Assembly (NCBI GenBank): GCA_964188305.1
Contig: OZ076898.1
Source of the DNA: Podarcis bocagei
Taxonomy: Eukaryota
Length of the DNA stretch: 64,000 nt
Reading direction: 5' to 3' (one strand)
Below, piece after piece: positions 5,778 to 33,161 of this stretch. Every line of letters begins with the position of its first letter. Within the stretch, counting starts at the first letter, position 1. A model generated the notes under the pieces. That model was given only the letters and a program-made list of their open reading frames with translations, had not been told where the DNA came from and searched no databases. The position numbers and the translations under genes are program-made.

Positions 5778-6118
5778 AGAGGGACACGGGTGGTGCTGTG
5801 GGTTAAACCACAGAGCCTAGGACATGCTGATCAGAAGGTCGGTGGTTCGAATCCCCGTGACAGGGTGAGCTCCCACTGATCGGTCCCAGCTCCTGCCAAC
5901 CGAGCAGTTCGAAAGCACATCAAACTGCAAGTAGATAAATAGGTACCGCTCCGGTGGGAAGGTAAACAGCGTTTCCGTGCGCTGCTCTGGTTCGCCAGAA
6001 GCGGCTTAGTCATGCTGGCCACATGACCTGGAAGCTGTATGCCTGCTCCCTCGGCCAATAAAGCGAGATGAGCACCGCAACCCCAGAGTCGGTCACGACT
6101 GGACCTAATGGTCAGGAG
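5778..6118 (+). mobile_element. Sauria SINE (tRNA-derived head), 13-bp TSD
   Basis: Head GGGACACGGGTGGTGCTGTGGGTTAA with B-box GGTTCGAATCC, a typical body and a Bov-B-like 3' part (CAGAGTCGGTCACGACTGG). TAAAGGTCAAAGA is duplicated at 5765-5777 and 6119-6131. Confidence 0.92.
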
Positions 6119-6589
6119 TAAAGGTCAAAGAGCAATACCTTGACTATAGCCCCATTAGATCATGCTATCCTTTGAGGCTTACAGCTGAGTAGCCTTTTGA
6201 AGGCCCACATGACCCCATGGCACTCTGCCTCTTTCATGGGGACAAATTTATGCACCACTTGGGTGTAAAAAGCAGTTTATGAAGAAAATAAAACAACAAC
6301 ATCAACATTAAAAGGGTTTAAAAACAACTATTGAAAACATTTTTTAAAAAAATCAGCAATAAACTAAAAACAGAATAAAATATGAACACTAACACTGCTA
6401 TAGTGACAGGGGGCAGATCAGTACTTTAGATGAGTACCCATGCATTAGTTCTTATACAGAACACAGTGAGTCTTTCTTGTTTTATTGCTCTCAACCCTGA
6501 AGCTGCACCTTCAGGCATTGAAAATTTCATTTTTGTTATTAGAACTACTCATTCAACTAATGTTAACTTCCTGAAATGGCCTACATTAT

Positions 6590-6666
6590 GTTTTAATGTA
6601 TTATATACTCTGATGTTAGCCGCCCTGAGCCCGGTCCTGGCCAGGGAGGGCAGGATATAAATAAAA

Positions 6667-6714
<48 letters not shown>

Positions 6715-6748
6715 GCTGCTGCTGCTGCTGCTGCTACTACTACTACTA
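6590..6748 (+). repeat. L2-type 3' end followed by compound (ATT)n(GCT)n(ACT)n microsatellite
   Basis: GCCGCCCTGAGCCC...GGGAGGGCAGGATATAAATAAA, then trinucleotide tracts at 6667-6748. Confidence 0.7.
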
Positions 6749-7234
6749 CATAAATCCAACTCATTATGTCCTTAACCATAAATATAGTTTACGGCCTGAA
6801 TATACACTGGCAGCCCTTTTGTTTCCATGCCAAATTTGAGGTGTTTAGATATTAAAAGCCTTATGTGGCCCAGGACCCCAAGCACTGACTTTCCCTATGT
6901 AAAACTACTGGGACTGTGACATCATCATGAGAAACCCTTCTCTTTGTGCCACTGTTGAGGGAGGTCCAGAAGGTGGTGACAAGAGAACAGGCCCTTTTTG
7001 TAGTCGTATCTCATTTTTAAAAAAGAATGCTTTCCGCAGAAAACCCAACTTCTCATCATTTCAGTGCCAGGTAAATGCAGTTCTCTTTTCCTGGGCATTT
7101 CTAATATTAGTTTCTGGGCAGAAACTAATAATATAATATAATATTTTTAATTTTTTGGTAATTTCATCACTAAATAAGTTTAAAGCAATATATAAGGATG
7201 CTTAAATAAGAATCGATATACATTTAAATAACAT

Positions 7235-8185
7235 TTACAGTTTTGAATCTTTCTGATAAAACCTAAGCACTTTCCTCACTAGCCTCCTTATAGCATTTTT
7301 CATCTCTGTATTTCTTAATGTGTAAATGATTGGATTCAGCACTGGGCTGATAACTGTGTAAAGAATGGAGACCACCTTATCCACTGTAAATTTCTTGAAG
7401 GGCTGGTCATAAATATAGATACATGGGATGAAGTGTAAACTCACTACTGTGATCTGGGCTGCACATGTTGAAAGAGCTTTGTGCTTCCCTTCTGAGACAT
7501 GATTTCTTATCTTGAACAAGATGATGCTGTATGAAATGAGCAAAGCAATGAAGGTTCCTGTCACAACAAGTCCATTGTTGGAGACCATGAGTAGTTCAAC
7601 AGTATAGATGTCTGTGCAGGCCAATCTGACCACCTGTGGAACATCGCAGTAGAAATTATCCAGTATGTTGGGACCACAGAATGGTAACTGCAGGATCAGT
7701 GCTACCTGGACCATGGAGTGAATGGAGCCACCTAGCCATGCACACAAAATGATCCCAAAGCAGGTTTTCTTGTTCATGATGATCATGTACTGCAATGGCT
7801 TGTGAATAGCTAGATATCGATCAACTGCCATCATTGCAAGAGAGAAAACGACTGTACCCCCAATGAAGTGAAAAAAGAAAATCTGTGTCAAACATCCATT
7901 GAAGGAGATGGTTTTGTTCTGGGAAAAGAGCACTTGCAGCAATTTAGGTGCAGTTACTGTAGATTCACTAACATCCAGAAAAGCCAAGTTGGCCAGTAAA
8001 AAATATAAGGGCATGTGGAGGTGGTGGTCTGATATTACAGTGATTATAATGGTGACATTCCCTAACCAAGTAGCTGTATAAACTGTCAGGAATAGAAAAA
8101 ATAAAAACTGTTCAAATTCTGAATTTTGTGACATTCCTACTAATACAAATTCTGTAACTCTGCTTGTGGAGTTATCCACTGCCAT
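7235..8185 (-). CDS. Olfactory receptor, family 4 (OR4D-like), 316 aa
   Basis: Motifs GN, MAVDRYLAIHKPLQY, FYCDVPQV, KALSTCAAQITVVSLHFIPCIYIY and PVLNPIIYTLRN. ATG at 8185; minus-strand acceptor TTCCTCCCTCCAG with AG at 8209-8208; candidate upstream donor CAG|GTAATA at 8620. Confidence 0.95.
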   Translation of the reverse strand: MAVDNSTSRVTEFVLVGMSQNSEFEQFLFFLFLTVYTATWLGNVTIIITVISDHHLHMPLYFLLANLAFLDVSESTVTAPKLLQVLFSQNKTISFNGCLTQIFFFHFIGGTVVFSLAMMAVDRYLAIHKPLQYMIIMNKKTCFGIILCAWLGGSIHSMVQVALILQLPFCGPNILDNFYCDVPQVVRLACTDIYTVELLMVSNNGLVVTGTFIALLISYSIILFKIRNHVSEGKHKALSTCAAQITVVSLHFIPCIYIYDQPFKKFTVDKVVSILYTVISPVLNPIIYTLRNTEMKNAIRRLVRKVLRFYQKDSKL

Positions 8186-8394
8186 TCTGAAGACTTGTGA
8201 CAAATATCTGGAGGGAGGAAATAATATTTTTTTTATTTCATTTTATCCACATTTTCATTTGGTTATCAGTTTATTTCTTCACAATGTTCAAAGCATATGG
8301 GTGATTCTATTTTTGGTCACTTTACCTCGTGAAAAATTTCAAGAACTTAAATTTTGTCTTAAAAAATCTTATCTGTCTCCTGCTTTTGGACTTC

Positions 8395-8482
8395 CTATAG
8401 GCATCTGCTTGGCTGCTGTGACTGGAAAGCAGAATACTGGGCTTGACTGGCCATGTGCCTGATTCAGCAGTGCCTTCTTATG
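8395..8482 (+). mobile_element. Old CR1-like 3' end fragment
   Basis: GGCATCTGCTTGGCTGCTGTG...AGAATACTGGGCTTGACTGGCC...TTCTTATG; similar copy at 10380-10462. Confidence 0.5.
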
Positions 8483-8871
8483 CCCTCCTGTGATCTTATG
8501 TTTATCCATCCAGTTTAATATTGTCTACTCTGAATGCCAGAAACTCTGCAGAAAGAATTTACTACCATCACGCTAAAAAGTTAAAAAAAAAAATCTCATC
8601 CATAAGAAGGCTAATATTACCTGCTGTCCAGCAACATCCATGTCAATAATAAAAACACTGAGGGAGTAAGTTGGGCTCAATAGTTTCCAACCATATGCAG
8701 ATTACATCTATCAAATGATAACTTCTATACCTTTGCTTCCATTTTAATCACACTCTGCTTTCCATGCTATTCTTCTAATCTGCACATCTATGTATCTCTC
8801 TGCACTTCCCCACCTCCCTGCTCTTCATTATTAGGAATAGGCTGAGATATAACAAAAATCCTTATTATAAT

Positions 8872-8946
8872 ATTGTTTTTACTGTTCTGCTGGGAGCCAC
8901 CCAGAGTGACTGGCAAAACCAAGCCAGATGGGTGAGGAATAAATTA
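8872..8946 (+). mobile_element. L2 3'-terminal fragment
   Basis: GGGAGCCACCCAGAGTG...GCCAGATGGG matches the reverse complement of 58320-58367. Confidence 0.6.
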
Positions 8947-9486
8947 ACCACCACCACTACCACCACAGTGTTTCTTGAGTTATCTGTGCCTGTTGTAGAA
9001 GAGACAGATGGATTCCATTTAAGGGGCTGCACAGCAGCTCTCCCACTTTGCTTTTCTGTGTTGACACTGGAGTCAGTGGGATTGTGTCCATTAAGATGTG
9101 ACTATTTAGAACAACAACAAAGAATTCAACAAAGAAGCAATTAGAAGTGGTCCAATACCTTTTAGAGAAGGATATGTACCTTCTTTGGAAGGCAATTATG
9201 TAGCAGACAAGCCTAATTTTCCCCAAAACAAAACAAAAATATATTCACCACATATGAAAATTTGCTGTTCATCCTATATGTTATGTCCCTCAATTTATTA
9301 TTTAGCAGTACAATGCATCTGTACCTAGATGCTTCAATTGGTATGTTGACCTGCCCTCATTGCTTGTGCAATCATTTTTAATGAATTATTGAATCTAAAA
9401 GCCATTGCCCAATCTCACAGGACTTTCTGTGGCTTTCACACTAAATGTGTTTAAGTAGCAAAATTAAGATGATAACTAGCTAGCTA

Positions 9487-9489
<3 letters not shown>

Positions 9490-9527
<38 letters not shown>
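9490..9527. repeat. (GA)n microsatellite
   Basis: Direct reading. Confidence 0.95.
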
Positions 9528-9529
<2 letters not shown>

Positions 9530-10319
9530 CCAGTCTGAAGGAAGCAAATTAAAGTCCCATAATGTCAATGGGAAAACCTCAAATCTGCCATTAAAATAAA
9601 ATGCTTCACTTTAGTTGCCATAACATTGTGTGAGAAACAAGCCTGAAACTCTTGAATTGATACATGTTAAATGAAATGAAATAAGTGCACCATAAATACC
9701 TGATGTGTCCAAGATCTGAGATTCTACTTCACCAAGACCTTCCAAAATCTAATGTACTTACAGCTTTGATGTGATCACTGGTATTGTAATAAGCAGGAGA
9801 GAAAATTAGCCTACTTCTGTGAGAAAACACAGTCAACTTTGGCTTCCCCATGTGGTCTCTGAAGCTGTTGCCTAAATTTAATTTAGCAAGAGACCATAAC
9901 ATCTCTTGGGTCTTCAACTGCTACTGCTTTAGCTCTTCCTAGAAATGTTTCAGAGGTATCATTATGTAAGGAAAGCTGCATCAATGGACCAGTTACATGA
10001 TTGCTTCTCCAAATTTGATTCTCATTTCATTCTTTTTCTGCTGAAAGTGTGTCAGGGTATGCATTGTGTTTGTGCTAGTTGGTCACATACAGTGTTAGGT
10101 AGCTCACAACAAGGGTGTGTGGTGACCTTTGAGGAGTTTGATGCTGCTTCTCTGTTTAGAAATCTGCCAGCTCTTGCAAAAGTGATTTGAAGAAAAAAGA
10201 AGAAGAAAATAAATGTTTCGGCTCCCTAGAGGCCATCAGAAATCCACCTGCTTTATTATGCACTAGCTGCAGCTTCTACACTATCAGTGGTCTTCACTAT
10301 CAGTGACTATATGCCTCTG

Positions 10320-10462
10320 GCTGGGAATCATAGACCAGGGAGTGCTCTGTGCTCAGTTTCTGCTTGTGAGCTTCTCATCGGCATCTGCTTGGCCACTGGG
10401 AGAACAAAATGCTAGATTAGATAGGACTTTGGCATTATCCAGCACATGCTTCATATACTCTT
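10320..10462 (+). mobile_element. Old CR1-like 3' end fragment
   Basis: Similar to 8395-8482. Confidence 0.5.
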
Positions 10463-10464
10463 AA

Positions 10465-10750
10465 GTTTAAAGGCAGTTTCGTGTATAATGCAGCTGCTGT
10501 AATCTAGCCTAGGGTTTATCAGAGCATAGACCATTGAAGTCAATTTATGTCTATCCAGAAAGCACTCCACAAAACACATGCCATTTGTGCATCTAAGGAC
10601 AGTAATAGATCCAAGTGTACCTGTAAGGAGCACAACTGCAACTTCAGGGGGAGGGTGACCCCATACAGAAAAGGATGTACCCTACCAAAACAAACTGAGG
10701 AACCCCCCTCCAAACAGTGTCTCTTTCTTTGCACTGAGCTTCAAATTCTT
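10465..10750 (-). mobile_element. Degraded L2 ORF2 fragment
   Basis: Minus-strand translation FLDRHKLTSMVYALINPRLDYS resembles the L2 motif LVHALVTSRLDYCN. Confidence 0.6.
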
Positions 10751-12104
10751 GGCCTTCATTAATTGTTACTGTTTTTTGCCTTTCCCTCATTTTTTTTTTG
10801 GTTTTTTTTTTTTTTTTTTTTTGCCTTTCCCTAAGTTAAAAAAAGGCTTAATATTGTTAGGAGTTTCTGAAGTTCTGTATAATTTGGAGGAAATGGAGTG
10901 GGCTGGATCAGCATAGAATAAGGGCCCCCATAAGGGGCCTGAGCCATGTACTAAACTCAGGTTAGAGCCTCTGCCACTCTGGAATCTCTTACTCTAGCCG
11001 CCCAGTGACACCCTGGTAGCTTGGCTTGCCCCCTCCCAGTGGTCAACACTGGGCAATCCCATAGAGGGGTGTTGGGTGCTCCCCTGACCCCAATGGAGTG
11101 TCATTGCACCTGTAGGGGCTCGGAAGAAAAAACTACACTATTCCACCACTACATTGTGGGCTGTGTAATCTCTCTTCAGGGAATCAGATTATTTGTCAGA
11201 GGTTCCAGGTTGCCCGCAAGATTGAGGGGGCCTAGCACACACTGCATGTATGTGACATCACACACGTTGTGCATGGACGCATGCAGGACATCGCAACATC
11301 TGGAGTAGGTTGGGTGTTCTGGAAACTGTGACGCAATGTGCAACACCTGTGACGTCATGCATGTGCACTGTGTCTGATCCCCTCAACATTGAGGCGCCCT
11401 TTCCAATAAAGATTGAGGGAGCTGGAGACACATTGGCCCCCTAGAGTTGGCGCATCTGTTGGTTGCAATGAAATACCTGGAGCTTTTCTCAAAGTTCCTC
11501 ACATGTTTCACCTGAGGAGAGACATCCAAATTCCACAAAAGGGGTCATATTGGAGGTTAACCAGCAAAAGGGCATCACCCAATACTACCCCACATGACAA
11601 TAGGCTTGTGGACAGGTTGTCTCTATACCGCATTGTGTTTAAGAGTGTGCCCTTGTTGATTTATATGGCTCAACAATTGTCTACACACAAGGACAGGCTC
11701 TACACTCAATAAGCAATACATGAGAATAACAGAACAAGTGCACAACTCAAATTCTTATGTTCTACACACAAATGTAATGTGAGATCAGCCTGATTTTAAG
11801 CGATGGGAGGAACATTATACTTTATGTTAGGGCATTGAATCTGAGGTCAGAGAACTCTTAAAGTTCTGCATATATGTGCTTTGGAATTGACTCAGGAAAG
11901 TGTTGCCATAGTTTGATCCTTTGGGATGCATACCTGCTGAATGATGAACAATTTTTTTCCATATATTCTGTAGGAAACAGAGTTGTACTAATTCAGTCTC
12001 TATCATTAAGAAAAGAAGAGTGGGGCATGACACAGGTTGGTGGCTACTTAATTCTTAGAATATTTAAACTGCAACTTTTTTAAAAATTAAAAGGGTATTA
12101 AGTA

Positions 12105-12346
12105 CAGTGGTACCTCTGGTTAAGAACTTAATTCGTTCCAGAGGTCCGTTCTTAACCTGAAACTGCTCTTATCCTGAAGCACCACTTTAGCTAATGGGGC
12201 CTCCTGCTGCTGCTGTGCCGCCGCTGCACGATTTCTGTTCTCATCCTGAAGCAAAGTTCTTAACCCAAGGTAATATTTCTGGGTTAGCAGGGTCTGTAAC
12301 CTGAAGCGTATGTAACCTGAAGCATATGTAACCCGAGGTACCACTG
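12105..12346. mobile_element. Non-autonomous Tc1/mariner (Tigger/pogo-like) MITE, 242 bp
   Basis: TA|CAGTGGTACCTC...GAGGTACCACTG|TA; empty site in paralog near 500-520 (GAAGTATTATTTTCC). Confidence 0.92.
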
Positions 12347-12832
12347 TATTATCCTCCTCCAATTGCTTCAAATATTAAAATGATTCCATGGCCCACAAAA
12401 CTAACAGTATGAAGGTATAAAAGAAACTTGAAAAGAAGCAATATGACCCTGAATGAACAAATTACTTATTGCTGTCAAACTGGAAATATGACTGTGAGGG
12501 GTGTGTCTCCAGTATGAATCTCTATAGCTTTCTGAATGAGGCAAGACAGATAAAAACAATGTATCTCAATGAGACCATCCATGGTAACGTGATTTAATTC
12601 TTACTTTCACAAACAAATCAAGGAAGATAAGAGGGAGCAAAGGATAATAATGGGAAGTTTATGGTTCCATGAGATACTATGGGTGCAAATTATATTTGCA
12701 AAGAGAGAGGGTTGCAGAATGGTTCTCTCTTCTCTCCTACTTCCCTTGCTCTTTCTACTAATGTGCCATCCACTTTCTGGTGCACATATTTTTTTTCTGT
12801 TTTGCTTAAAAGGTATTGCAGCAATACTACTA

Positions 12833-13057
12833 CAGTGGTACCTCGGGTTAAGAACTTAATTCGTTCTGGAGGTCTGTTCTTAACCTGAAACTGTTCTTAA
12901 CCTGAAGCACCACTTTAGCTAATGGGGCATCCTGCTGCTGCCACACTGCTGCATGCGATTTCTGTTCTCATCCTGAAGTAAAGTTCTTAACCCGAGGTAC
13001 TATTGCTGGGTTAGTGGCGTCTGTAACCTGAAGCATCTTTAACCCAAGGTACCACTG
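12833..13057. mobile_element. Same MITE family, second copy, 225 bp
   Basis: TA|CAGTGGTACCTCGG...AAGGTACCACTG|TA; empty site in paralog near 18875. Confidence 0.92.
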
Positions 13058-13883
13058 TACTGCCAAAAGAAGTAAAAAAACAACAACACCTCAAGCTGGG
13101 GAGGGTAGCCTGTTCCATAACAATATATATAAATATAGGGTTTTGAGTAATGCTTCATGTAGGGAGTTCGATTTGAACAACTGAACTTTCAACCCTGTCT
13201 TCTCTATGTATTCTTTAAATCTGCTCCAATGGGTCTTCCTCCTCTCTGGAGCAGATATTGAGGATGCAGGAGACACTATGGAGGAGAGGAGGGGAAAGTT
13301 CTGTGGCATTAGTGGAAGTCTGAAGTGCTGCCGAAGCAGCAGCATCAGATATGGTTCATTATTTATTAAAATATTTCAACAGTAACAGTTTCAAACAGTT
13401 AAATTAAATATTAAGCTTGAAGGTAAGAACTTGTGTGTACTAGTTTCAAACTTATTTAGGAGGTTGCTTATGCTTCCCCCTTTTGAAATTTGTAGGAGAT
13501 AAACGTTTTTATTGTCTATAAAGCTTTTAAAAAGTTTTTTAATGAAACTTTTCTTTATTTCATCATTTATTCAGTTTAGTACAAGAAAGGGCTTAGTTTT
13601 CAATCTATGAAAAATAGTATATCAGTCCTAATATCTTGTATTTTTTTCAATTTCTCATGGTCCATTTCTTCCCTTGATTTAAACAAAAACAGCTGATGTT
13701 TCTCATGTATAGTTCCATGCATTATCTCACAGAAACAGGCATGTGGGAAGTTTTGTCCTTCTCTGGCTCATGGTTTCTATACCTTTCTTACATAATCCAG
13801 AATTATCACAGCAGAAGAAGAATTGGTATGACCAATACCTGTACCTCCACTATCCCAAGTGACTCTTTCAGCTGCACATTACA

Positions 13884-14828
13884 ATGAGGACCCAGACAAG
13901 GAATGTGACTGAATTCATCCTATTAGGATTCGCTGGAACTAAAAGGGTTGAACTTGTACTCTTCACTTTATTCTTCATCAGCTATGTTTTTGCTTTGGTA
14001 GGCAACTTTATCATTATTGCCTTGGTGTGGTGTGAGAGGACTCTTCACAGCCCAATGTACATGTTTATTGCTAACCTGTCATTTTTAGAGACTCTGTACA
14101 CCACCGCGGTTATCCCCAAAATGCTAGTCAACTTCATGAGTCAGAGAAAATCTATCGCCTTCCATAGTTGCATTTTGCAGGTCTACATCTATTTCTCAGC
14201 AGGTTCCAGTGAGTTCTTCCTTCTGGCTGTCATGTCATTTGACCGCTATCTTGCCATTTGCAACCCACTGAGATATACAGCCATCATGACCGTGAGACTT
14301 TGCCTCCTGCTTATTGCTGCCTCCTGGATGTGGGGCTTCTTTGCAGTCCTACCACCTACAATCCTGGTAAGCCAGCTGCCATTTTGTGGACCCAATTCTA
14401 TCAACCATTTCTTTTGTGATGTTGACCCAATTCTCAAGCTGGCCTGCTCTGATGTAAGGAAAATTGAAATGATTAATTTTGTCAATTCAGCTTTGCTCCT
14501 CCTAGGCTCATTACTGTTGACGAGTGTGTCCTATATATCCATTATTGGAACAGTGCTTAGGATCCCCTCAGCAAAAGGACGACAGAAAGCATTCTCTACA
14601 TGTGCCTCTCACCTAATTGTGGTGACATTGTTCTATGGGAGTTCTATTTTCATTTATGTTCAGCCGCAAAAAAACCACTCATTGGACCTCAACAAGGTAG
14701 CCAGCATACTGAACACAGTGATAACTCCATTACTGAATCCTTTCATTTATAGTCTGAGAAACAAGAAAGTGAAAGAGGCCCTGCGACATTTAACCAGAAG
14801 AAAGATTTTCCCTTTAATTAATTGCTGA
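13884..14828 (+). CDS. Olfactory receptor, family 6-like, 314 aa (paralog 2)
   Basis: Full set of OR motifs; highly similar to 1786-2793; acceptor TTTCAG at 13866-13871. Confidence 0.95.
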   Translation: MRTQTRNVTEFILLGFAGTKRVELVLFTLFFISYVFALVGNFIIIALVWCERTLHSPMYMFIANLSFLETLYTTAVIPKMLVNFMSQRKSIAFHSCILQVYIYFSAGSSEFFLLAVMSFDRYLAICNPLRYTAIMTVRLCLLLIAASWMWGFFAVLPPTILVSQLPFCGPNSINHFFCDVDPILKLACSDVRKIEMINFVNSALLLLGSLLLTSVSYISIIGTVLRIPSAKGRQKAFSTCASHLIVVTLFYGSSIFIYVQPQKNHSLDLNKVASILNTVITPLLNPFIYSLRNKKVKEALRHLTRRKIFPLINC

Positions 14829-15986
14829 GTCCTGGAAACAGGGGAAAGTTTCCCTACACTATGTAGTGTTGATTAACAATTAAAGTAAATGGGGACTATT
14901 TGTAAAATAAAAAATAAAAATCTTTATTACAGCTTTAAAACTTTTAGTAGTGGGTGGGGTTGAGTTTGTAGTTTTTACTGAGAAGACCAGATTGAACATT
15001 CTCACCCAGGGTCACACATTCTCACAATTTTGTGGTTTCCTGAGCTCCTTTGGAAAGCAGCAGAAAACCAATATCATTGTTATTAATAATATATATTACT
15101 ACAAACCTGAAAATTATTCTGTGAGTGTTAGATGTGGAAAATAAATCCTCAAAGAAACTGTTTCACTTAGCTAATTACAATTATATAGTTGCATTTCTGA
15201 GTTTTGTTTAATGTTTTGACTGGTACTTTATATTTGAATTTATAGATCTCCAGCAGCAATATATTCCACAAATATTTTCTGGGGAATTTTTTGGTCATGC
15301 TGAAGCCAGTTGTGAAATACTTGAAGTTATTTATGATGATTTCTAATTGCAAACGTTGAAGAATTAAGCCACAATTTTCTTTTGCATAGTCAACTAGTAC
15401 TCTGTTGTAGAGAGACAGTCATTTGTCTCTATTAAATGGAATCTGCAGCAAAATATTTTGGTGTGGAATGTTTCTGTTTAAGGTGCCAGCCAGCCAGTCA
15501 GACATATCCCATTCCAGGGTACTCCATTACATCCCTTCTAGTTTTGTGGTTTCCAACCTCAACTCCCACCCCAGGATTGACCCAACAATTGAGCATTCAG
15601 TCTGGTGTGGAGGTGCCATGCTTCACAAGAAGCTTTCTTTTAGGAAAGCCATTGGCAAAGCCTCACTCAGAATCTGAAAGATTGCCCTTTCCCCTACACA
15701 GCTGTTGATCCTGGGGTGGGTGAGTGAGGAAATCCAATTTCAGAGTGTCATCTGTATCCTGCAGGATTACAGCTGTTATGCAGTGAGCAATCCTTTGCTG
15801 GGTGTGTGAGTGCTCCTCAAGTGTCCTTCCTCTCCTTGATCCACCTATTGAGGGGAGGGGGCAGTTTGGGGAGTGAGGCTCCATAACCAGCTTTTCTAAA
15901 GGAAATTTGCTTGTGAAACACTCTGCGGGACTTCAGCTGGTACAGCTTTCAGGCTTGCAAATGGATTCCAAACTTGGAAACATGGT

Positions 15987-16030
15987 TTCTTCTTCTTCTT
16001 CTTCTTCTTCTTCTTCTTCTTCTTCTTCTT

Positions 16031-16067
<37 letters not shown>
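15987..16067. repeat. Compound (TCT)n(ACT)n microsatellite
   Basis: Direct reading. Confidence 0.95.
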
Positions 16068-16070
<3 letters not shown>

Positions 16071-17164
16071 CTTGAAGCAAATAACATGGAAAGAAGCACT
16101 GCAGTTGTTCTCTTAGATTTCTAAGAAGTGGCTCTTATGTCATGTGAAAGCTTGAATATAATGCACAAATTAGCAGGGAAACATCCAGAAAATGAAATAA
16201 ACTGCTGTGTGAACACTGCCCAGGTGTACAGCAAAGAAGCAAAGGGTAAAACTTCCACACTCAACATAACAGTCTGAGCCAGATCAGAGAGCACAAACAA
16301 AAAACAACAACACTCATGCAATTGCTAAGTGTGTGTCCAATGTTGTTTCTAGTTTGGCCAGAAAGGATAAACCAATAAAACATGTGAAGTACAGTGTACA
16401 TTTTTGATAGGAATCGTTGATAACCCTTGATATTGGAAGTGGAGTCTTATCACTGCACATTATCACATTAAAAGTGATTATTCAATAAGTACACAGTTCA
16501 TCCCATAAACAGGATAATTCCTACATAAACTGATAGAATGTCCCCTAAAATGGCTGCAAGAAACAGCACTATGTCCATGTCAGCACCCAAATGCCTGAGA
16601 GAACAAAAATGACTGCTTGGTGCTGATCAGATATCAGTGGTAGCACTAGGCAAGGTTGCCCGTTAAGAACATTCTGCACATGGGTATGGATAACTGATAT
16701 GGATTAGACTGATCTGTCCATCCCTGGTACAAAGTCAAGGCATGAGGAACGTATAATACAATAGCCCTGAGATATACTGCATCTATTGCAGTATAACAAA
16801 ACAGTTAACTTCTCAAATAAGTGGTGTGGTAGAATGCACTCTAAAATTTATAATTGTGTGCTCTGTGCACAGTTGCTTGCCAAGATGTCTGTTAGTAACT
16901 TTTCCCATCACAGTTCCTCGCCTTGCATTTATTGGCCTGGAAAAAATAACGTAAGAGTTTTTAAACTTGTTAAAGTTCTTAAATGCTTTTTCAGAGGCAT
17001 TTAGAAACACTAGAATATTGTCACTTCTACGTACACTATCCCCAGTAAGGGGTGTAGCATATTAAATTTTACTGAGAGTAGACCTATTGGAATTAATGGA
17101 CATACGTTAGTCATGTCCATTGATTTTAACAGGTCATTAATTTTAATATTCTATGCATAACATT

Positions 17165-30761: not shown

Positions 30762-31320
30762 CCGTATTTTTCGCCCTATAAGGCGCACCGGCCCATAGGA
30801 CACACCTAGTTTTCGGGGGAGGAAATCAAAGAAAATATATGATCTCTCCCCCCCCCCAGCTCTGGGAGCAGCGGACAGGCTGCACGCAGCCTGTGCGCTA
30901 CTCCAAGACCTTCTTCCTGCTTTTGCGGGAGGTGGCGGAATTCCCCCACCTCCCGCAAAAGCCCACAGGAGCCATGCGCGACTCCTGCGGGCTTTTCAAC
31001 CAGGAGGGAGAAGGGACTGAAACGGCCAGTCAGTCCCTTCTCCCTCCTCGGGGAAAAGCCCCCAAGAGCAGCGCGCTCTTTAAAGGCTGCACGGCTCCTG
31101 CGGGCTTTTCTACGAGGTGGGGGAATTCCCCCACCTCTTAGAAAAGCCCATAGAAGTCGCACACCCTTTAAAAATGTGTGTGCCCCCCCAACCCACAAAG
31201 GAACCCACAAACGGGCTCCGAAGTGAAGAGGGGGAAGTGGCGCGGTGCTGTGAGTTTACTGCTTTTTCTGTGGAGCAAAGCCGCATAGCCGTTGCCGGAG
31301 AGCGCTGCCTTTGGCATCTA
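30762..31320. mobile_element. Truncated Tc1/mariner (Tc2/pogo-like) element with GC-rich hairpin interior
   Basis: Left end TA|CCGTATTTTTCGCCCTATAAG; no matching right TIR seen, so the right boundary is approximate; hairpin at 30919-30962. Confidence 0.6.
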
Positions 31321-31750
31321 AAATAACCAACCGTGAGTACTGGAACAGTAAATATTTGGACTTCAGATAAGAACTGGCGAAATAAGAAGGAATCTGGACT
31401 CTATATTTATGTTTGTGTGTGTGTGTGTGTGTAGATATGTATATGTATATGCACATATTCCACGATGAGTTGATTATGGTATTTGAAAAGTCAATCAATC
31501 TCTGACTTTTGTCTTCTGGGTTTCTGGGGGTTTACTTGTTGTTATTCTGTCTCTCACAGCTACAATAAACCTACCATTAAAATTATGGACTGATCATTTC
31601 TTTGTCAGAGGGCAAACGGACAAATTTAGCAGGGGATCAAATACTATATATATATATATATATATATATGCTTTCGTAGATTTTCACGGGTACAGGAATG
31701 CAGGTTTTGGTGTCTTCGGGTATCTTCCCGTGTAAGAGTTGGGGTGTCTA

Positions 31751-31790
31751 GGCGACGTTTCGACGAGGTCTCACTCGTCATCTTCAGGCT
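31751..31790 (-). ncRNA. Minimal type-I hammerhead ribozyme motif (minus-strand copy)
   Basis: Reverse complement reads AGC-CTGAAGA-T-GACGAG-TGAGAC-CTCGTC-GAAAC-GTC-GCC. Confidence 0.7.
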
Positions 31791-31916
31791 GGTGCTTTCG
31801 GCTTCTTGTTACTAGAACAGAGCAGGATCTCAGTGTTTGAGTTCCCTCAACAGTATTTATAGGAACTCAAACACTGAGATCCTGCTCTGTTCTAGTAACA
31901 AGAAGCCGAAAGCACC

Positions 31917-31956
31917 AGCCTGAAGATGACGAGTGAGACCTCGTCGAAACGTCGCC
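31917..31956 (+). ncRNA. Minimal type-I hammerhead ribozyme motif (plus-strand copy)
   Basis: Core CTGAAGA at 31920-31926, extra U, 6-bp stem II GACGAG/CTCGTC, GAAAC, palindromic ACGT stem III, predicted GUC cleavage after 31953. Confidence 0.7.
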
Positions 31957-32072
31957 TAGACACCCCAACTCTTACACGGGAAGATACCCGAAGACACCAA
32001 AACCTGCATATATATGGAAGATACCCGAAGACACCAAAACCTGCATTCCTGTACCCGTGAAAATCTACGAAA

Positions 32073-32126
<54 letters not shown>

Positions 32127-33161
32127 TGTGGTAATCTGATGATTTGATATAAATAAAATTAATCTGATCTGGTCGCTTTTTTCTGCAATCCACATAATGT
32201 TTGCTCAAAATAAGCTTGACTGAATTCATTTTGGCTTATTGCTAGATAAATGGGATCTTCCTAACTGAGGGTCCACCTTGTACACAGGCCCAAGGCGTGT
32301 CTCTCCCCCCCCCCCACTATCCTTGATGAGGTGGGAGATTGAGCCCAGCCCACACAATGGCCCCACAATCACACCATGGCCTATTGGCCAAACAGAGATT
32401 GGTGGTGTGATCGTGGGGGAATATAAAAGGTGGTGGTACATTTCTGGGGATTCACCTGGCTTCTCTGTCTCGCTTTCAGATGGACCACTTCAGATCTTTG
32501 GCACTGGATGCACAGCAGTTGCTGGAGCCTTTTCTGGCGTACCTATGGAGCCTTGGAAGTGCATAGTTATGCAGGGAGTAGTCTCTTCCTTGGCCCCCTC
32601 CACATTTAAATCTTACAAGAAAGCCTGGCTGATTTTATAACGTTCCTTGTGCAGAATTTATCTATTGCTGTGGATCTTCTACAGATCAGGTTTTGCAATA
32701 CATAGCACACTTATATTAGCTTTGGCGTGCGGCTAAGACTCTTAAAATCCAGTCTGCTGCCATTTCTTTTTTTTTAGCAAATCCCTGTTTGCCCATGATC
32801 CGTGTGCAGCTTTTGTGCTCCGGAAGGCTCTGGAGGGCTGGCGTAGACTTCAACCATCTTCTGGTGTTGGCCTCAGGCCTGTCACCTTTGACCTATTATG
32901 TAAAATTCATGAAAAAATAATATCTGTTTGCTCATTCCGGTATGAGGCACGGTTGTTCTCTTCCAATTATTCTATCGCAATAGAATGGGTGAGGTTGTTT
33001 TTGAGGAGGTCCGTGGGGGGGGGGGGATTCCTAGGGGTCTGCACTTAGAGGACATATCTTTGGGAGAGGCAGAATTGGTGGTCCAGATTAGTCGGTCCAA
33101 AACGGACCAAAGAGGTAAGGAGGCCCTGCTTAAGTTGCCTGCAATGGTGCATGGAGGTTCC

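Follow-up and report, generated by a model that had tools for sequence, protein, structure and literature searches.

The insertion that occupies a (TA)n microsatellite in the intergenic part of a lacertid lizard olfactory receptor (OR) cluster is very probably made up of two head-to-head, 5'-truncated 3' ends of a Penelope/Poseidon-type Penelope-like element (PLE), dead on arrival. Each copy contains the last 64–80 nt of the pseudo-LTR, a type-I minimal hammerhead ribozyme motif (min-HHR) and the initial 84 or 112 nt belonging to the element's open reading frame (ORF). This identification draws on direct observations, namely homology to an element with reverse transcriptase (RT) and GIY-YIG-like domains, termini shared with a second lacertid locus, the (TA)n target and covariation within the hammerhead stems. 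The 64,000-nt stretch of DNA analysed, referred to here as the window, was described in a first-pass annotation as containing a very young, ORF-less, (TA)n-targeted PLE derivative. The PLE affiliation, the young appearance, the lack of an ORF and the (TA)n target all stand; the term derivative does not, the copies being truncated ends of an autonomous element which stop at what appear to be its RT start sites.

Two arms, at 31698–31845 and 31862–32009, form an inverted repeat of 148 nt that is 100% complementary, with 16 nt between the arms and (TA)n at both sides, in full agreement with the coordinates originally reported and without a mismatch. Those limits hold for the core only, as pairing extends out to the microsatellite. 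Since 31645–31728 is perfectly complementary to 32016–32099, the left copy spans 31670–31845 (176 nt). The right arm contains 37 nt extra at 32010–32046, composed of ATATAT and a repeat of a 31-nt stretch, and across the ~207 paired positions there are 0 differences between the arms. Such perfect identity fits a recent insertion, although gene conversion between the palindrome arms could equally maintain it.

From left to right, the structure begins with 25 nt of (TA)n target DNA (31645–31669), delimited by the sequence and by inverted-repeat pairing. The left copy follows on the minus strand (31670–31845, element positions -64 to +112 from the ORF ATG), as defined by the inverted repeat, BLAST within the window and alignment to a Podarcis muralis locus, L002, and its outer end, GCTTTCG, lies at +112, so that the so-called tail is included. 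Within this copy lie the first 37 codons of the PLE ORF (31670–31781, minus strand; MTSETSSKRR...), recognised from the ORF list and a phmmer match to the N-terminus of a protein designated P0001, and a min-HHR motif comprising core, stem II and GAAAC-GUC (31754–31787, minus strand), located by motif scan and by a covariance model, R1, at 39.5 bits. The 16 nt between the arms (31846–31861, plus strand) were initially regarded as a spacer. They are not foreign DNA but PLE sequence extending the right copy upstream, 15/16 identical to L002 8885–8900 and conserved in a related contig, L001. A TATA-like motif is indeed present there, as the first-pass annotation stated, but on the other strand: the element's own motif is TATTTATA on the plus strand, and the reported TATAAATA is its reverse complement.

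The right copy, on the plus strand, spans 31846–32009 (element -80 to +84, from the L002 alignment) and terminates with CCTGCAT at +84, a tail-less 3' end. Its min-HHR motif (31920–31953, plus strand), with predicted cleavage after C31953, was identified by motif scan, covariation, RNAalifold and R1. Beyond this copy, ATATAT, i.e. (TA)3 (32010–32015; sequence and repeat search), separates the +84 end from an extra 59-bp PLE fragment (32016–32074, plus strand, +54 to +112) whose identity with the outer portion of the left copy is 100%, and 48 nt of (TA)n target DNA, assigned from the sequence (32075–32122), form the right flank. The 59-bp fragment could stem from a second short initiation or insertion or from the resolution of the insertion, as a remnant, and the 37 extra nt from a second short initiation or from slippage between the 31-nt repeats. 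Microhomology at the junction between the copies amounts to 1–2 nt at most. The coding content is limited to the first 37 codons of the PLE ORF, with no intact RT/EN ORF of its own, and the insertion is a fragment, not an autonomous element. BLAST within the 64-kb window found no further copies of the arm.

The short ORF provides the link to a PLE. An ATG inside the hammerhead motif, formed by A9, the extra U and G10.1, begins a 37-codon frame reaching as far as the left arm's outer end. The additional U ahead of stem II had been pointed out earlier and is a published PLE feature; it is no mere bulge, however, being the middle base of the element's start codon. A phmmer search of the 37-aa peptide against 1.8 billion representatives returned one match, P0001 (E 6e-4, 68% identity), with residues 1–37 aligned to residues 1–37. 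Pfam identified no domain in P0001 itself. On the contig that contains it (L001, from SRR4426308), the next ORF has RVT_1 (2e-17) and GIY-YIG (1.5e-3, below the Pfam cut-off), and the GIY-YIG matches as a whole lie below Pfam's curated cut-off. Among proteins, the L001 ORF is closest to those from Podarcis muralis (85%) and Vipera latastei, with Anolis carolinensis more distant, and its relatives bear RVT_1, DUF8422 and HTH_animal. At the DNA level, the window and L001 share an identical stretch of 45 nt surrounding the hammerhead, with the flanks being ~80% identical, and the window arm is 97.6% identical to two inverted PLE copies in L002. The link to an element with RT and GIY-YIG domains, called for by the first-pass annotation, is thus made, through the ORF stub that leads to L001 (with GIY-YIG sub-threshold) and through the match of the arm to L002.

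PLE membership is also reflected in the arrangement of the parts. The hammerhead lies at the pseudo-LTR/ORF junction, the ORF being called 6 nt past the motif start in L001 and in two further PLE loci, L003 and L004, and the hammerhead/ORF geometry of the window is the same as in these three. In addition, 5' truncation and an inverted adjacent copy occur together in an AT-rich, microsatellite target. Two overlapping frames (119–688 and 669–2987) make up the PLE ORF in L001, indicating a frameshifted copy or an assembly error; L003 has a single continuous PLE ORF of 994 aa. None of the contigs used appeared to be of human origin, and runs of N were not encountered.

Long terminal inverted repeats and TA at both ends would also be features of a Tc1/mariner-type MITE with a TA target-site duplication, merely resembling a PLE. 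The probability of this is practically negligible, as the arms match the pseudo-LTR/ORF start of an RT-encoding PLE at 97.6% identity and end at its RT start sites, the entire unit is a palindrome of PLE sequence and not a pair of terminal repeats around a distinct core, and no second copy occurs within the 64-kb window. The MITE assignment was rejected.

The P. muralis locus (L002; OZ076968.1, 4346–9090) is a near-perfect PLE palindrome of 4.65 kb with a 5-nt loop, located in (TA)n. Its left copy meets the microsatellite with GCTTTCGTAG, 112 nt into the ORF, at L002 4394, where the +112 end is identical to that of the window, and its right copy meets it with CCTGCAT, 84 nt into the ORF, at L002 9048, the same +84 end. 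Termini at +112 and +84 are common to the window and L002, one of each per palindrome. An NCBI gene model, LOC144326219 (735 aa, span 6001–16158), begins within the L002 palindrome and is probably derived from a transposable element.

These termini help to weigh a different history, in which a simple 5'-truncated PLE insertion was followed by an inverted DNA duplication, for instance where repair by fold-back or a template switch during replication affected the fragile (TA)n. Identical arms and a small loop are in keeping with such an event, and (TA)n, being self-complementary, readily forms hairpins. A duplication of this kind would copy one terminus, so that the presence of two different ones, +112 on one side and +84 followed by (TA)3 and the +54 to +112 fragment on the other, counts against it. 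The Podarcis palindrome has the same +112/+84 asymmetry and the unique flanking DNA is not duplicated, making this history very unlikely. An assembly artefact, i.e. a fold-back chimeric read or a repeat mis-join, is scarcely credible. Tandem and inverted PLE structures are known to trouble assemblies (PMC8557442), yet the structure in the window is asymmetric, with an element-derived 16-nt loop and 37 extra nt in one arm, the unique flanks outside (TA)n are not palindromic and the same architecture is encountered both at L002, in a public P. muralis assembly, and in the literature.

For two PLE 3' ends joined head to head, PAc, a Poseidon-type PLE of Anolis carolinensis, offers an experimental comparison (Mob DNA 2024; PMC11167929). 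The ORF of PAc begins at hammerhead stem II, the cut site lies ~25–26 nt past the start codon and RT initiates internally, 111–118 nt into the ORF, with two RT start sites bounding an optional tail of ~30 nt (PMC11167929). Its endonuclease prefers AT-rich DNA, both target strands being cleaved and extended (PMC11167929). Cleavage by the PAc hammerhead requires its protein, and insertion in vitro can do without that cleavage (PMC11167929). The insertion in the window resembles PAc in having an ATG at the start of stem II, 3' ends at internal RT start sites and an AT-rich target (PMC11167929), and L004, an A. carolinensis PLE locus, shows an ATG-to-cut spacing that fits the PAc description along with the motif geometry of the window. 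By analogy with PAc, the outer ends of both copies would coincide with PLE RT start sites, the +112 and +84 ends delimiting an optional tail of 28 nt. The two systems differ in that their related proteins are ~45% identical and their stem II sequences are different, with compensatory changes; furthermore, stem I has 2 bp in the window as opposed to 3 bp in Anolis, and the window copy, unlike PAc, is a non-coding fragment. Two independent lacertid insertions ending precisely at +84 and +112 show, in vivo, termini that agree with the pair of RT start sites defined in vitro for PAc.

The canonical architecture of PLE insertions was reportedly set out by Evgen'ev and Arkhipova in 2005, and truncated inverted PLE insertions are said to have been described already in the first Penelope papers. 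PLE insertions are characteristically truncated at the 5' end and adjoined by an inverted, likewise 5'-truncated copy; a tail of 30–40 bp, often one-sided, and a bias towards microsatellites are further hallmarks (Craig et al., 2021; PMC8557442). The truncation, inverted copy, one-sided tail and microsatellite bias of the canonical insertion are all as in the insertion studied here, which departs from it in having no full-length copy, just two truncated ends that yield a compact 405-bp fold-back. In metazoan PLEs, pairs of min-HHRs on opposite strands, 100–700 bp apart, have been reported (PMC4209133). Because these hallmarks and inverted min-HHR pairs are already published, the element in the window is an ordinary instance of a known structure, and a truncated inverted PLE insertion with min-HHR is of a kind already known. 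The extra U, an ACGU stem III and inverted copies, correctly named as PLE features in the first-pass annotation, are all in print (PMC4209133; PMC8557442). Taken alone, the insertion matters little, with the min-HHR known since 2014 and the ORF-in-ribozyme layout, from the anole element, since 2024.

Animal non-LTR retrozymes are comparable to the insertion in being non-coding and in carrying PLE-related type-I hammerheads (NAR 2020, PMC7229834; bioRxiv 2026, 10.64898/2026.07.22.740005). They are composed of direct tandem repeats giving circular RNAs (PMC7229834), whereas the ribozymes of the window are inverted, with no same-sense pair. A retrozyme was rejected as a candidate, the motifs being on opposite strands with no direct repeat of the motif in the window.

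The hammerhead consists of a 34-nt motif, CTGAAGA-T-GACGAG-tgagac-CTCGTC-GAAACGTC, which occurs once per strand (31920–31953, plus; 31787–31754, minus) with 0 expected in shuffles; for a looser scan (CTGANGA, 0–1 extra nt, stem II of at least 6 bp, GAAA), 0.013 chance sites are expected per 64-kb window. One motif per arm is what had been claimed, and R1 scores both sites at 39.5 bits. The catalytic core (C3-U4-G5-A6-N7-G8-A9, G12-A13-A14 and, at the cleavage site, H17) can be read directly as CUGAAGA ... GAA-ACGU-C. Four diagnostic traits of metazoan PLE min-HHRs are available from Cervera and de la Pena (2014; PMC4209133). The corresponding columns are present in the window and invariant across an alignment of six PLE hammerheads, and the window motif shows all four traits, among them the G10.1-C11.1 pair, palindromic 15.2-16.2 and a long stem II with a short stem I. 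Metazoan PLE min-HHRs share with it the CUGANGA and GAAA cores, the G10.1-C11.1 pair and a 6-bp stem II, as well as a palindromic ACGU suited to dimers in place of a stem III hairpin (PMC4209133).

Support for the motif as a conserved structure comes from four extra PLE loci (L003–L006), whose proteins are 45–59% identical to the L001 ORF and which each contain the same hammerhead motif with an entirely different stem II sequence. Pairing in the six-sequence alignment extends to 78.8% of cells, compared with 52% when shuffled and 26–36% with slid partners, and 7 pairs of stems I and II are changed on both sides across the four distant PLEs. Stem II has 94% of its cells paired and both-side changes in 4/6 pairs, in what is a small sample of ~five lineages; such compensatory changes across distant PLEs provide the stem II covariation among copies on which the earlier proposal had been made to depend. 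RNAalifold, applied to the alignment, independently predicted both stems. When built from L003–L006 only, with the window family left out, the covariance model R1 scored 39.5 bits (rough E ~8e-8) at both sites and hit nothing else in the 64-kb window. A U3/A8 covariant of the core, described in 2014 for Schistosoma, is present in two of the four distant loci. It appears as TTGAAAA, replacing C3/G8, at L003 117 and 3028 and at L005 120, on metagenome/SRA contigs.

The Rfam hammerhead models gave no match in the whole window at the gathering threshold, nor in 31600–32150 at E up to 10, where the only matches were sub-threshold and miRNA-like, reflecting the hairpin. This blank carries little weight, because the Rfam hammerhead models likewise miss the Anolis PLE hammerhead (L004 1440–1600). 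Folded alone, the 81-nt ribozyme region was no better than shuffles (z = -0.32), which is to be expected of a hammerhead motif with its non-canonical core contacts. Stem I was rightly described as weak, with only 2 bp (GC/GC). The window, L001 and L002 all have 2 bp, as opposed to 3–5 bp, covarying, in the relatives, and the cleavage competence of the lacertid hammerhead is uncertain for this reason. Among metazoan PLE min-HHRs the window motif thereby stands at the short extreme for stem I, together with the PLE hammerhead of D. virilis, likewise with 2 bp (PMC4209133), and its activity is putative. The hammerhead is real for the PLE family, with self-cleavage, as a dimer or assisted by protein, being putative.

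The origin of inverted PLE structures is still referred to as undefined (PMC8557442). In the window, a PLE ribonucleoprotein/endonuclease would have cut the AT-rich (TA)n target, and cDNA synthesis would have started internally, from the sites at +84 and +112. The arms are nearly symmetric in element coordinates, with a loop of 16 nt here and 5 nt in L002, which suggests that one arm served as template for the other, through snap-back of the growing cDNA or a switch from one cDNA to another, with 1–2 nt of microhomology at most; such templating, as proposed, would explain both the perfect identity and the small loop. The outer ends differ (+112 and +84), pointing to separate synthesis or resolution of the two ends. 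The near-symmetry, the different outer ends and the 37 extra nt are not accommodated together by any one simple model of formation. One defined route is put forward tentatively and with rather low confidence, whereby the first cDNA folds back with a loop of 0–16 nt and is copied, after which the endonuclease resolves the product at the tail to leave one +112 and one +84 end. The one-tailed, small-loop pattern fits both the window and the Podarcis locus, although two cases prove nothing. Small loops and one-tailed asymmetry constrain models of how PLE inverted repeats originate.

With regards to function, the predicted fold for RNA of the entire unit is a single perfect hairpin (-361 kcal/mol, z = -45). 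The first-pass annotation had proposed a ribozyme switch or a dsRNA source, neither of which finds support because the transcript would fold into this single hairpin and bury the ribozyme; no second same-sense ribozyme that could form the dimer is present in cis in the window. As judged from the predicted fold and from a unit without coding capacity, the hammerheads here appear to be passengers. Of the upstream pseudo-LTR, the region in which PLE promoters reportedly reside, just the 16 nt with the TATA-like motif remain. Rearranged copies of Penelope that have long inverted repeats coincide, in Drosophila, with regions producing siRNAs (PMC3681739), so the idea of Penelope dsRNA or siRNA is not new. 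If PLE hairpins are transcribed, they could also give rise to small RNAs that target the element's own 5' region, to which RT binds.

A more ambitious role would see the palindrome as a working RNA device driven from the TATA-like motif, functioning either as a hammerhead switch that masks itself or as a source of dsRNA and small RNAs directed against the PLE family or affecting neighbouring OR genes. The TATTTATA motif kept in the loop, the very stable predicted hairpin and the overlap of Drosophila Penelope inverted repeats with siRNA-producing regions (PMC3681739) are compatible with such a device, which is nonetheless very improbable. Upstream of the TATA-like motif the rest of the pseudo-LTR is missing, the predicted hairpin sequesters the ribozyme while the second sense copy required for a dimer is absent in cis, and in PAc the hammerhead needs its protein to cleave, with cleavage being dispensable for insertion in vitro (PMC11167929). 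Moreover, the structure is fully accounted for as a by-product of insertion.

The neighbouring ORFs of the window are olfactory receptors, with matches to 7tm_4, and the OR-cluster setting given in the first-pass annotation is thereby confirmed. A (GT)n microsatellite (31413–31433) lies upstream of the PLE insertion and a poly-C run (32303–32313) just downstream. Three GC-rich units of ~47 nt are arranged as back-to-back inverted repeats, 75–83% complementary, at 31038–31172, and may belong to a repeat of SINE- or MITE-like type. Beyond this locus, the Rfam hammerhead models are shown to miss the whole PLE min-HHR class; the Rfam 15 hammerhead models do so even at E up to 10, a gap with respect to a very abundant metazoan motif.
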